Assembly (NCBI GenBank): GCA_964199315.1
Contig: OZ116707.1
Span: forward strand, 22,878,001 to 22,942,000
Source: Orbicella franksi
Taxonomy: Eukaryota
Reading direction: 5' to 3'
DNA length: 64,000 nt
A model generated the notes under the pieces. The model was not told the origin of the DNA. It ran no database searches and saw nothing but the letters and a program-made list of their open reading frames with translations. The position numbers and the translations under genes are program-made. This document shows positions 1 through 64,000 of the stretch, one piece after another (positions within the stretch are counted from its first letter, which is position 1; every line of letters begins with the position of its first letter).

Positions 1-84
1 TCCAATATCGTTGAGCTGCGCTGCAAGATCAGCAAATGGCCTCCCTTTCGTAACCTGAGGACCGCTAGTGACCAATATGGCAAT
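1..84 (-). CDS. Gene A exon 34 (partial): VWA9 C-terminal half IAILVTSGPQVTKGRPFADLAAQLNDIG
   Basis: Acceptor TTTCCTACAG, phase 0; truncated by the window edge. Confidence 0.85.
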   Translation of the reverse strand, partial: MAILVTSGPQVTKGRPFADLAAQLNDIG

Positions 85-3000
85 CTGTAGGAAATCGTGG
101 AACCATTTACATATCGGCAGAATTTATGCTTAAGGACTTTTGTACTAATTGTTTGTGTGCATCAAGAATGCGCACCTAATTATCACGCTACCTCATACAT
201 CAAACGCGCGCTTAACTTACAAAATGAACAACAATGGTGCTAGTGGCCCCTATTACAACGCTTCGTTAAGCTTTATGAGTGCTTCGAAAGCCTCTTTAGG
301 AGTTACATTTATGGATAGGATAAAATTTCTAACGCAACAGAGCCACATATAGAAAATATGATAGAGAAGGTCGCCTCCGTTGAATCATGCGATATCCAGA
401 GGAATCAGATTGGGGAAAACTGTGTAAAGTGGACATGGAAGTAGTTGCTGCTAAAGGGTTCCCATACCTTCTTGGCATCTGGTCTTGATCCTCCCCTTCT
501 GGTAAAGAGAGCAGTGGCAGCAAGTGGTAGTGCTAAATCAATGCGTCTCTCACCTTGAATCTGAGTTATACGATCGATGAAGGTGTTGACAGTAGAAGGG
601 GTCAAGTTTTCATCTCTAATTGTGTTAAAGTATAGTGAAATGGACGGCGTAGATGTGTATCTCATTATTCCAACTCTTGCACCATCTGGTTTTGCGGAAA
701 CATCAAGCCCATTAACAATTCTTTTTAAGAAATCGAGCACAGCTCTCCAGTCGTCTGCTCCAAGTGCAAGGGTTTGGTCAAGAACGATTCCAACATCTAA
801 GGGTCTTTTGCCATCTACCGAAGAAGAAAAGAGTGAATTAGCGTCAAACTATAAGGAACTCAGTAGCTTGGTTGAGCTTTGGGACTTTTAACTGAGAAGA
901 AAACAATGAAGATAACTGGCGGCCTATGATTCAGGCTTACCTGGCCGTGGAGCAGTGCAGTTAGGTTTTCCATTGGATAATATCACATTACTCCTGTATA
1001 TCTTTACGCCATTTGCATCCACACAAAAGCACTCTTGGTTTGCGCACTGTAGCTTGTCAAAACTTCCATCAGGCCTGCAACGCGGTGTATAGCTTGAGGG
1101 ATCTCGTCCTTGATATTGTTTTTCACATGGTGTTGCTGGCTTGCCTGAGATCAATACAATGTTTATAAATTCGTTTAACTATGTTTACTCCCAACCATTC
1201 AGTTTTAAGATAGAAACATTTTCCTTCTCATGTCTTGAATGACTATACGAGGAATGTCTGAGAACTTGCAAACTTTGATGAAATCTGATGTTGACGATAC
1301 TGCCTTTTTAAAATCCCTATGGAAACGTGGGAACTAAATGACGAACCAATTCTGTTTTTTTTTTTAACATCTTCGGCCTCGACGCTTATTAGCAATGCCT
1401 CTCCAGTAACCTATCATTAAGAACAAAATTCATTTCCTCTCAGTAATACTTTTTGTGAGTGTGTTTCACTATCTGCGTACGTTTTTACCAAATAGGCTAC
1501 TCTGCACTTTTAAACATACCAGCTTGAGGACATCTAAGATACTTGGTAGTTCTTGACCCTGTCAATTCCGAGCCAGACGCATCTACGCACCAGCATTCTT
1601 TAGTCAATGACTTGCACTGAACTTCTTCATACTTTCCATCTGGTTTACATTCAGGTCCACGCATCATTGATCCTTGAGAACTGACTTGCTGGGCCTGACA
1701 ATCCGTAGGTTTTATTCCTACAAAAGAAGAAACCAATGGGCAGTTATTCAGCGGTTGTGTTTGCGAAGAGGTCTAAGAATCTAAGGCAATAAGAAACGAA
1801 AATAGATCTTTGGACTAGAAGTATTCTATTGCAGCTTCATGGAATATTTGTTACAAATAGTCGAAATATATATAAGGAGCTATCCAGACATAATTGTTGT
1901 AACTTATAGAACTGAACCTTTCAACAAGTAACTGACAATCATTAGATGACCCGCCTGTTCGTAATAAACTCAAACACTAAAGTTAAAGTTTTCTCCAAGC
2001 ATATTATTCTGGTACTACGGTGATTAATTGTCTTAAATCTCAATACCTGTCTCATCACAAACGGGCCTTCCATATCTGACATTAACACGAGTGTCGGGCC
2101 GTTCGTCTCCATTCTGGTCAACACAGTAACAGTATGACATATCACACTGCAACGGCTCAAAGCTTCCATCGGGTTTACATTGTGGTATCTTCGCATGAGG
2201 GGTGTAACGGCTAATAGCATGTTGATAACGTCGTTGACATTCTGACAATTTCTTGCCTGGTTTGACTGAAAACGAGAGAAATGAGGCAATGTTCAGTGGT
2301 CTATTAGTAACCTGAAACATTATCGAAAAAAGTTTAAAAAGTTCAAGTAACTTGTTGCATCGCGAGCTACAGAGTAATCAAGATTTAAAGCATTTTTCGT
2401 TTCTGTAAATGCCATAAGAGTGGGAGACGCGGTGGCCTCATGGTTAGTGCGCTCGTCTTCGGATCGAGCGGTCTGGGTTCGAGCCCTGGCCGGGGACATT
2501 GTGTTGTGTTCTTGGGCAAGACACTTTACTCTCACAGTGCCTCTCTCCAGCCAGGTGTATAAATGGGTACCGGCCAACCTAATGCTGGGGGTAACCCTGC
2601 GATGGACTAGCATCCCAACCAGGGGGGAGTAGAAATACTCCTAGTCGCTTCATGCTACAGAAACCGGGATAAGCTCCGGCCTGATGGGCCACTTGGCTCG
2701 CATGCAGACTTTACCTAAATGCCATAAGAAATAACTTCACAATATTTTAATAATTATTTTCTCGGATTTTAAATTCACGGATATGATGTAGAAATATAAT
2801 GATCAAAAGCCCAATAAGACATCCTTTGTTCCACAGGGACTGACTTGAACATGTAAATGTTCCAACCTTTCAATTAAATCATAACATTTAAAGCCCGACA
2901 AGCGATTTTCTACCTGTTCTGGTGTCATAATCAATGTCAGGTGTAACTGAAGGAAAATCGTCTCCCACATATACATTTTCGGTGATATCATTCAACTGTG

Positions 3001-63890: not shown

Positions 63891-64000
63891 GTAAAAATAC
63901 GGTTATTTCTTCAAAGTCCTTAAAGTTATGATATACTTGAGACCATGTTCAGTGCTCAACTAACCTTTCTTTCGAACGCCTAAAAGGCGAAGCACTACAC

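Follow-up and report, generated by a model that had tools for sequence, protein, structure and literature searches.

A divergent pair of genes for giant multidomain secreted proteins in the coral Orbicella franksi

Papilin and other invertebrate mosaics of Kunitz, WAP, Kazal and thyroglobulin type-1 (TY) domains are large secreted stacks of inhibitor folds. WFIKKN1 and WFIKKN2 (GASP-2 and GASP-1) carry WAP, follistatin-type Kazal (FS/Kazal), Ig and two Kunitz domains in that order. Thyropins such as equistatin, the p41 fragment and saxiphilin share the TY fold, and tandem VWA arrays occur together with Kunitz or WAP domains in collagen VI alpha-3 and alpha-6, in collagen XXVIII and in the Nematostella WAP/vWFA protein NV2.11346. 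Two further proteins of the sea anemone Nematostella vectensis, NvThyr-1 and NvvThy, stand in a matrisome catalogue as entries without a described architecture, function or inhibitory activity (PMC12549020). Here we compare with these systems a stretch of 64,000 nucleotides, hereafter the window, from the coral Orbicella franksi (NCBI GenBank assembly GCA_964199315.1, contig OZ116707.1, positions 22,878,001 to 22,942,000 of the forward strand). The window has a G+C content of about 40% and an exon-intron layout like that of an animal genome, and the RNA and DNA sequencing runs in which it occurs carry coral labels. It holds two giant genes for secreted proteins that are transcribed divergently: gene A on the minus strand and gene B on the plus strand. 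On balance we lean towards reading A and B as paralogous genes for matrix-resident secreted glycoproteins, probably polyvalent protease-inhibitor scaffolds, that are conserved across Hexacorallia.

The gene pair and its relatives in Hexacorallia

Within the window, gene A runs from a start codon at 30706 (minus strand) to the window start, where it is still open, in the domain order signal-WAP-FS/Kazal-Ig-Kunitz-WAP-WAP-VWA-TYx6-VWAx7-TYx3-VWA(N-half). Gene B runs from a start codon at 41148 (plus strand) and is open at the window end, with the order signal-WAP-8Cys-FS/Kazal-Ig-Kunitz-Kunitz-TYx17-VWA-Kunitz. A Pfam scan covered 20 window exons, taken as stop-free stretches from the initial annotation of this DNA; five of them were TY exons, all above the gathering cut-off. 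WAP, Kazal_2, Ig/I-set, Kunitz_BPTI, VWA and Thyroglobulin_1 all exceeded their gathering cut-offs, the second WAP of gene A excepted. TY and VWA domains were counted with hidden Markov models (HMMs) built from the window's own copies, the VWA halves by jackhmmer. These gave gene A nine TY, nine VWA N-halves and eight C-halves, that is, eight complete VWA domains and a ninth as an N-half; together with Pfam they gave gene B 17 TY, one VWA and three Kunitz domains. The 26 TY domains of the window were matched at E 3e-17 to 4e-27. Module exons of both genes are phase 1-1, both exon chains keep an open frame, and a phase-0 intron interrupts every VWA of either gene at the same place.

The initial annotation had proposed that inhibitor and matrix domains of several classes are distributed over two divergent genes with a common N-terminal module, and both proposals are borne out by the domain searches and the two start codons. 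Its counts for gene A (three WAP, at least nine TY and at least nine VWA) were correct, as were the 17 TY and the VWA of gene B; the 'second Kunitz' that it gave gene B was short by one, with two Kunitz domains in tandem after the Ig and one after the VWA. The common module is visible as a single aligned stretch, in which the FS-Ig-Kunitz core of gene A (residues 65-337) matches that of gene B (residues 124-392) at 32% identity (E 1e-37). A and B are accordingly best regarded as separate genes and, by this alignment, as ancient paralogs.

Protein comparisons identify gene B as the ortholog of a conserved hexacorallian TY-repeat protein of about 2,640 residues, the NvThyr-1 orthogroup. Its modelled portion in the window (29 exons, 1,886 residues, no stop) aligns from residue 1 to residue 1886 with Stylophora pistillata XP_022806048 at 70.6% identity, end to end and with 18 gap positions. 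Identity is 69% with Pocillopora verrucosa XP_058971828, 63% with Montipora foliosa XP_068710274, 60% with Acropora millepora XP_029198670 and 44% over about 1,790 residues, with equal domain order, with Nematostella vectensis XP_048580500. The exon-domain order is likewise identical at two ortholog loci, L002 and L003, the latter being that of Nematostella. Since the orthologs are 2,552-2,654 residues long and continue after Kunitz 3 with TYx2-WAP-TYx6-Kunitz-TY, about 750 residues of gene B should lie outside the window. The Acropora palmata ortholog (2,642 residues) is wholly encoded by one intronless contig of 8,305 nt, and assembled transcripts of the pocilloporid ortholog measure 8.2-9.6 kb; gene B orthologs are therefore expressed as single mRNAs. 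NCBI names them 'uncharacterized protein', 'thyroglobulin-like' or 'Equistatin', and a TY query against representative proteins returned many unrelated multi-TY proteins, for example nidogens and saxiphilin-like proteins.

The TY array of gene B is old, with each repeat under its own constraint. The best match of a repeat was the repeat at the same position in 17 of 17 cases for both Stylophora and Acropora and in 10 of 17 for Nematostella, and repeats within one protein share a mean identity of 38%. That the repeats have been kept distinct since corals and sea anemones diverged hints at many different partners.

Gene A, for its part, can be placed in a hexacorallian family of giant VWA/TY proteins, to judge from an exon-domain order shared with Actinostola and a start shared with Pocillopora. 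The Actinostola locus extends over more than 50 kb and reads WAP-Kazal-Kunitz-WAP-WAP-VWA-TYx6-VWA-TYx3-VWAx2-TYx8-VWA and onwards, its Ig exon falling below the HMM threshold; the 'hypothetical protein' annotated there spans only part of this exon-domain chain. In Pocillopora verrucosa the counterpart is an automatic RefSeq model of 13,691 residues with its start codon at L004:38. Positions L004:10-163 are 70% identical to window positions 30678-30839, the ATG and the residues after it match, and the predicted exon 1 of gene A is validated by the homology of this start codon to window position 30706. A tblastx search for exon 1 in Actinostola gave microsatellite noise only. The Pocillopora model suggests that gene A extends beyond the window, and the likely size of its product, about 13,700 residues in that model, is the most striking element of the locus; if true, gene A would encode one of the largest secreted matrix proteins described for any animal.

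A connection to the mesoglea comes from Nematostella, in which four related proteins of one orthogroup were all quantified in isolated mesoglea (PMC12549020). They are NvThyr-1 (NV2.14419, core matrisome, annotated 'WAP', best Swiss-Prot hit WFIKKN2), NvThyr-2 (NV2.14040) and NvThyr-3 (NV2.19319), both with equistatin as best hit, and NvvThy (NV2.14046), which has vWFA and thyroglobulin type-1 repeats, agrin as best hit and the automatic annotation 'Collagen alpha-6(VI) chain' (PMC12549020). NvThyr-1, NvThyr-2 and NvvThy are higher in adults than in larvae, NvThyr-3 peaks in abundance in primary polyps, and the study places thyroglobulin-repeat proteins in one group with protease inhibitors (PMC12549020). 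NV2.14419 adjoins NV2.14418, named 'Mega-thrombospondin' (PMC12549020), and a 2,810-residue LRR/EGF/TSP_3/TSP_C protein is the product of the gene upstream of the gene B ortholog in Nematostella. This shared Mega-thrombospondin neighbour leads us to infer that NvThyr-1 is the Nematostella ortholog of gene B. For gene A, name and domain content make NvvThy a candidate ortholog; by gene numbering it is not adjacent to NvThyr-1.

The extracellular-matrix role put forward in the initial annotation thus finds support for gene B, via NvThyr-1 in the mesoglea proteome (PMC12549020). Its skeletal variant does not fare as well: a skeleton-specific role is unlikely and was set aside, since the non-calcifying anemones Nematostella and Actinostola have orthologs. 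The further statement that no named protein family has this combination of domains needs amending, in that the head follows the WFIKKN domain order and the Nematostella matrisome lists orthologs; the family is widespread in Hexacorallia yet uncharacterised. A literature search by ortholog accessions yielded no citing paper, and no functional study of the gene A/B family was found in the literature search. The two genes belong to a hexacorallian family that is conserved and already catalogued, though uncharacterised, and whose head is WFIKKN-like. The present gene models describe two conserved, unstudied components of the cnidarian body matrix and link them to a measured mesoglea protein of Nematostella.

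Exon models, splicing and genomic setting

Spliced RNA ties together the middle of the gene A model. Seven GT-AG or GC-AG joints on the minus strand chain Ig-Kunitz-WAP2-WAP3-VWA1 (two exons)-TY1-TY2, at an RNA depth of 70-170 in exons against 3-9 in introns. As these joints span both parts, the WFIKKN-like head and the VWA/TY arrays of gene A belong to one transcript. Had the exons been those of several small genes, as the initial annotation allowed, transcripts should have separated them; over Ig-TY2, spliced reads and contigs chain them instead. The RNA contig has loose ends at both ends of the chain, the upstream one at 22396, indicating that the chain continues. Metatranscriptome contigs carry 50-68% of the words of intron-rich stretches and so include unspliced RNA or DNA; they were never used as the sole evidence of splicing.

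The assembly gap (N) at 17982..18121 falls within the phase-0 intron of VWA1; the Pfam profile runs on without a break from one side to the other, and both flanks are part of a single mRNA in one reading frame. The joint from 19031 to 17901, seen in one RNA contig (depth 128) and in two polyA RNA-seq reads, skips 1,129 bases including the gap (joint coordinates 17899/17901-19029/19031). The Actinostola ortholog has the same two VWA1 half-exons 1.27 kb apart, with no domain match between them.

All gene A exons lie on the minus strand. Exon 1 (30652..30706) comprises the start codon at 30706, a signal-peptide-like sequence (MRDLVAILLCYALFHAVS) and a phase-1 donor, and draws on prediction together with the Pocillopora start homology. 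The WAP1 exon (26104..26298; Pfam WAP 26.6 bits; phase 1-1 splice sites, modelled) joins the FS exon (23506..23775; Pfam Kazal_2 E 1.4e-8; phase 1-1) directly in phase, so that gene A apparently lacks the 8-cysteine module of gene B. Next come the Ig exon (22118..22393; Pfam Ig_3 / I-set), whose donor at 22118 is joined by RNA to 21518, and the Kunitz exon, with P1 Ser (21333..21518; Pfam Kunitz E 1.4e-18; RNA at both junctions). WAP2 (20582..20755) is a divergent, WAP-like exon that scores 17.6 bits against a Pfam cut-off of 20.8; it has RNA at both junctions and a counterpart in Actinostola. WAP3 (19758..19907; Pfam WAP E 2e-11; RNA joints 19907/20582 and 19377/19758) is followed by a GC-AG intron (19752-19757, minus strand), which two RNA-seq reads and one contig support. 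VWA1 is formed by an N-half exon (19031..19377; Pfam VWA positions 1-106; RNA joint to 17901) and a C-half exon (17655..17901; Pfam VWA positions 106-172; RNA joints on both sides).

TY1-TY6 follow as six phase 1-1 exons (17221-17430, 16725-16928, 15483-15698, 14084-14284, 13743-13952 and 13421-13618; local TY HMM E 1e-22 to 4e-27). Two have a Pfam match; both ends of TY1 and the acceptor of TY2 (16928) are confirmed by RNA, and the rest are modelled. The remainder consists of VWA2-VWA8, seven domains of two exons each (2914..12711; jackhmmer halves in an open-frame chain, some junctions approximate), TY7-TY9 in three phase 1-1 exons (941..2265; local HMM and exon model) and the VWA9 N-half exon (1..814; jackhmmer and exon model), at which the gene is open. 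The phase-constrained model of gene A keeps about 2,850 residues open from 30706 to the window start and reproduces all confirmed joints but one acceptor.

Several unrelated elements lie in the introns of gene A. An open reading frame (ORF) of 153 codons with a GIY-YIG nuclease domain (10740-11198, minus strand; Pfam E 7e-5), in the VWA2-VWA3 intron, is probably what remains of a mobile element, Penelope-like or similar. The WAP1-Kazal intron contains a tRNA-Thr(GGT)-like sequence found by ARAGORN (24108-24181, minus strand), near which three ORFs (23908-25412) share a repeated peptide motif; this points to copies of one repetitive element, perhaps a short interspersed element derived from a tRNA. 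A microsatellite, or long simple repeat, in the Ig-Kunitz intron (21861-21986) swamps translated searches and was left out of read placement.

Gene B, on the plus strand, opens with exon 1 (41148..41220), which holds the start codon and a predicted signal peptide (MCQLFSLKSFAFLSLLAFNYDLSV) and agrees with the N-termini of full-length orthologs and with the position of the Stylophora gene start. The WAP exon (47733..47936) is supported by Pfam (WAP E 5e-9), the exon model and the ortholog alignment. Just before the WAP (47733-47770), about 10 residues past the predicted signal peptide, there is an R-x-R-R motif that is conserved in orthologs; its resemblance to a proprotein-convertase site suggests a short N-terminal propeptide. 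The 8-cysteine module occupies two exons (48822-48915 and 49362-49432; phases 1-2 and 2-1) between WAP and FS/Kazal. It is about 55 residues long, is conserved in Stylophora and hits no Pfam family at E<=1. It is followed by the FS exon (49796..50023; Pfam Kazal_2 E 7e-9; nearest solved chains agrin and follistatin), the Ig (I-set) exon (50662..50931; Pfam and exon model), Kunitz 1 with P1 Arg (51416..51622; Pfam E 4e-19) and Kunitz 2 with P1 Lys (52015..52182; Pfam E 1e-20; PDB matches including WFIKKN1 Kunitz 2, E 7e-16). TY1-TY17 are seventeen phase 1-1 exons (52290..61360; local HMM, exon model and positional orthologs). The VWA is encoded by two exons with a phase-0 intron (61801-62141 and 62954-63215; Pfam, jackhmmer and exon model), and Kunitz 3, with P1 Leu (63720..63890; Pfam E 3e-16), is the last exon before the gene leaves the window. 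In related corals the models vary: one Stylophora model ('Equistatin') skips the FS/Kazal exon, and Montipora capricornis isoforms range from 2,359 to 2,652 residues. Alternative splicing of whole domains is plausible, since the module exons are phase 1-1 and cassette skipping keeps the frame.

The start codons of A and B are separated by a spacer of 10.4 kb (30707..41147), and in Pocillopora verrucosa the 13,691-residue gene stands head-to-head with the gene B ortholog at a similar distance of about 10.0 kb. At such a distance a compact shared bidirectional promoter is unlikely. Nine long ORFs in this region had no Pfam match: five in the spacer (31199-31492, 32983-33312, 35198-35527, 37125-37424 and 38126-38413) and four in the first introns of A and B. 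In Nematostella no gene A-like exons were found in the 10 kb that precede the gene B ortholog, the neighbours being a TIMP gene and the large thrombospondin-type gene; none were found within 10 kb upstream of the Stylophora ortholog either, where the flank is too short to inform. The Nematostella TIMP gene (a stand-alone NTR fold; L003 4665-7928) immediately precedes the gene B ortholog and shares its strand, and a 7tm_1 receptor gene is nested within an intron of that ortholog (L003 29882-30829). Cooperation of A and B as a two-component scaffold is a possibility, for which the adjacency kept in Pocillopora, the paralogy and the near-identical mesoglea profiles of NvThyr-1 and NvvThy, the candidate counterparts, can be cited.

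Protease inhibition and competing interpretations

As inhibitor scaffolds, the two proteins would be exported into the mesoglea, where the FS and Ig modules and the VWA domains, most of which lack a metal-binding site, may tie them into the matrix, and the individually conserved inhibitor-fold domains might each restrain a different protease. Kunitz domains with P1 Arg or Lys would, by fold and P1 residue, act on trypsin-like serine proteases, the WAP domains presumably on serine proteases and the TY domains on papain-type cysteine or aspartic proteases; the head could in addition bind ligands. The P1 residues are Arg, Lys and Leu in Kunitz 1, 2 and 3 of gene B and Ser in the Kunitz of gene A. 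A full metal ion-dependent adhesion site (MIDAS; DxSxS, Thr and the Asp of TDG) is found in VWA1 of gene A only. VWA2-8 of gene A and the VWA of gene B have no beta-4 Asp and, for the most part, no Thr either, and share a signature of GG..RR.D.AL and G.W.

We infer inhibition by these domains from their folds and P1 residues, and several points weigh against it. The P1 residue of Kunitz A is Ser, and the FS-type Kazal loop is longer than in canonical Kazal inhibitors. Many TY, FS and Kunitz domains of matrix proteins are non-inhibitory, as in nidogen (TY), agrin (FS) and collagen VI alpha-3 (Kunitz), and we know of no member of the present family for which inhibitory activity has been measured. 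Most of the exon chain of gene A in the window, and all of it outside, is prediction or automatic RefSeq model. The evidence from mesoglea comes from a sea anemone and not from this coral, the mapping of gene A to NvvThy is a guess by description, and the matrisome table lists NvvThy among 'putative venoms' (PMC12549020).

Among other interpretations, it is possible, if unlikely, that these are mainly structural or adhesive matrix proteins in which the inhibitor folds act not on proteases but as rigid spacers, rich in disulfides, and as binding modules, as in nidogen, agrin and collagen VI. The long VWA arrays with incomplete MIDAS would suit such a role, as would the P1 Ser of Kunitz A, an FS domain closest to agrin and follistatin and the classing of the Nematostella orthologs as core-matrisome glycoproteins (PMC12549020). 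However, two Kunitz domains of gene B keep a canonical basic P1, the same authors group thyroglobulin-repeat proteins with protease inhibitors (PMC12549020), and 17 TY domains that are conserved repeat by repeat and mutually distinct fit specific partners better than spacers. We regard as rather improbable the idea of growth-factor traps, whose WFIKKN/follistatin-like head would bind TGF-beta-family ligands in the matrix and whose arrays would localise or present them. The WAP-FS-Ig-Kunitz-Kunitz order is that of WFIKKN, NvThyr-1 has WFIKKN2 as its best Swiss-Prot hit (PMC12549020), and the FS resembles those of follistatin and agrin, but full-length gene B orthologs are without an NTR domain, the FS match to the WFIKKN2 FS is weak (E 0.0018), a head query in a search that depends on shared words found no WFIKKN, and the head makes up less than 20% of gene B and about 3% of gene A.

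Sea anemones are known to secrete equistatin and Kunitz peptides, so one might think of a mucus or venom defence that blocks the proteases of prey, predators or microbes, in keeping with the place of NvvThy among 'putative venoms' (PMC12549020). Lengths of 2,640 to 13,691 residues and VWA arrays are nevertheless atypical of venom, and the orthologs were measured in isolated mesoglea (PMC12549020), which makes this explanation very improbable. We give hardly any credence to an annotation artefact, in which several smaller genes, or a mis-assembly across the gap, had been joined into giants. Any series of phase 1-1 exons will join up in frame, existing gene models vary in length and RNA covers only eight exons of gene A; against this, RNA joints cross both the head/array boundary and the gap, the order is collinear in five other species, and the arrays contain no promoter-sized gaps or extra signal exons. 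For gene B the artefact is largely refuted by the full-length intronless transcripts of its orthologs.

If the inhibition supposed in our favoured reading of matrix-resident scaffolds is true, both proteins would play a central part in controlling how reef corals turn over their matrix, grow and respond to wounds, and perhaps how they defend themselves against pathogens. The WFIKKN-like head offers a possible tie to the regulation of TGF-beta-family ligands. A bolder proposal, which we hold to be doubtful, is that the FS-Ig-Kunitz head is homologous to the head of vertebrate WFIKKN, that WFIKKN is a short relative of an ancient giant matrix family, and that the cnidarian giants combine, in the mesoglea, the sequestering of TGF-beta-family ligands with a large set of individually specialised domains for protease inhibition.

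Comparison with described systems

WAP, FS/Kazal and Ig occur in WFIKKN order in both genes according to Pfam, with the 8-cysteine module inserted between WAP and FS in gene B, and gene B continues the likeness with two tandem Kunitz domains, the second with a basic P1. Unlike WFIKKN, gene A has a single Kunitz followed by two WAPs, gene B has the extra module, and both proteins carry TY/VWA arrays and are 5 to 25 times longer. Single domains tell a less specific story. The gene B FS matches the WFIKKN2 FS structure weakly (E 0.0018) and follistatin at 1e-17, agrin and follistatin being nearest; Kunitz 2 matches WFIKKN1 Kunitz 2 at E 7e-16, which is among its best single-domain PDB matches and within the general Kunitz range. 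The word-index search with the head, which depends on shared exact words, retrieved no WFIKKN. The head can thus be called WFIKKN-like in architecture, with a domain similarity that does not appear WFIKKN-specific.

Pfam showed no NTR domain in the gene B ortholog models of Stylophora and Nematostella, which extend to the C-terminus, nor in the window exons scanned. In the longer ortholog models and at ortholog loci L002 and L003, searched with six local HMMs only, there was no room for a further domain. This negative applies to gene B orthologs, the C-terminus of gene A lying outside the window. Membership in WFIKKN was rejected on the ground that the NTR domain is missing from full-length gene B orthologs.

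The TY domains are of the six-cysteine type-1 class of the thyropins, with QC and CWCV motifs and PDB matches to saxiphilin and to the inhibitory p41 fragment. Equistatin, however, has three TY domains only, as against 17 to 26 in gene B and dozens in gene A, where they stand among other folds. The tandem VWA arrays with Kunitz or WAP domains recall collagens VI and XXVIII and NV2.11346, but TY arrays are absent from the collagens, and no run of at least six Gly-X-Y repeats occurs in any frame of the window. A collagen VI-like reading was rejected because the window has no such stretch and the gene B orthologs have no Collagen Pfam family.

Papilin was rejected as well, since it matches through Kunitz only (about 5% coverage); no TSP1, ADAMTS spacer or PLAC domain appeared in the Pfam results for the 20 window exons and the gene B orthologs. 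Many mosaics of a comparable kind came up in the protein search: a 3,907-residue protein of Oculina patagonica reads Kazal-Ig-Kunitzx3-WAPx15-Kazalx8 and onwards, and echinoderms alternate WAP, TY and Kunitz domains. The stacking of inhibitor folds is a recurrent design in corals and other invertebrates.

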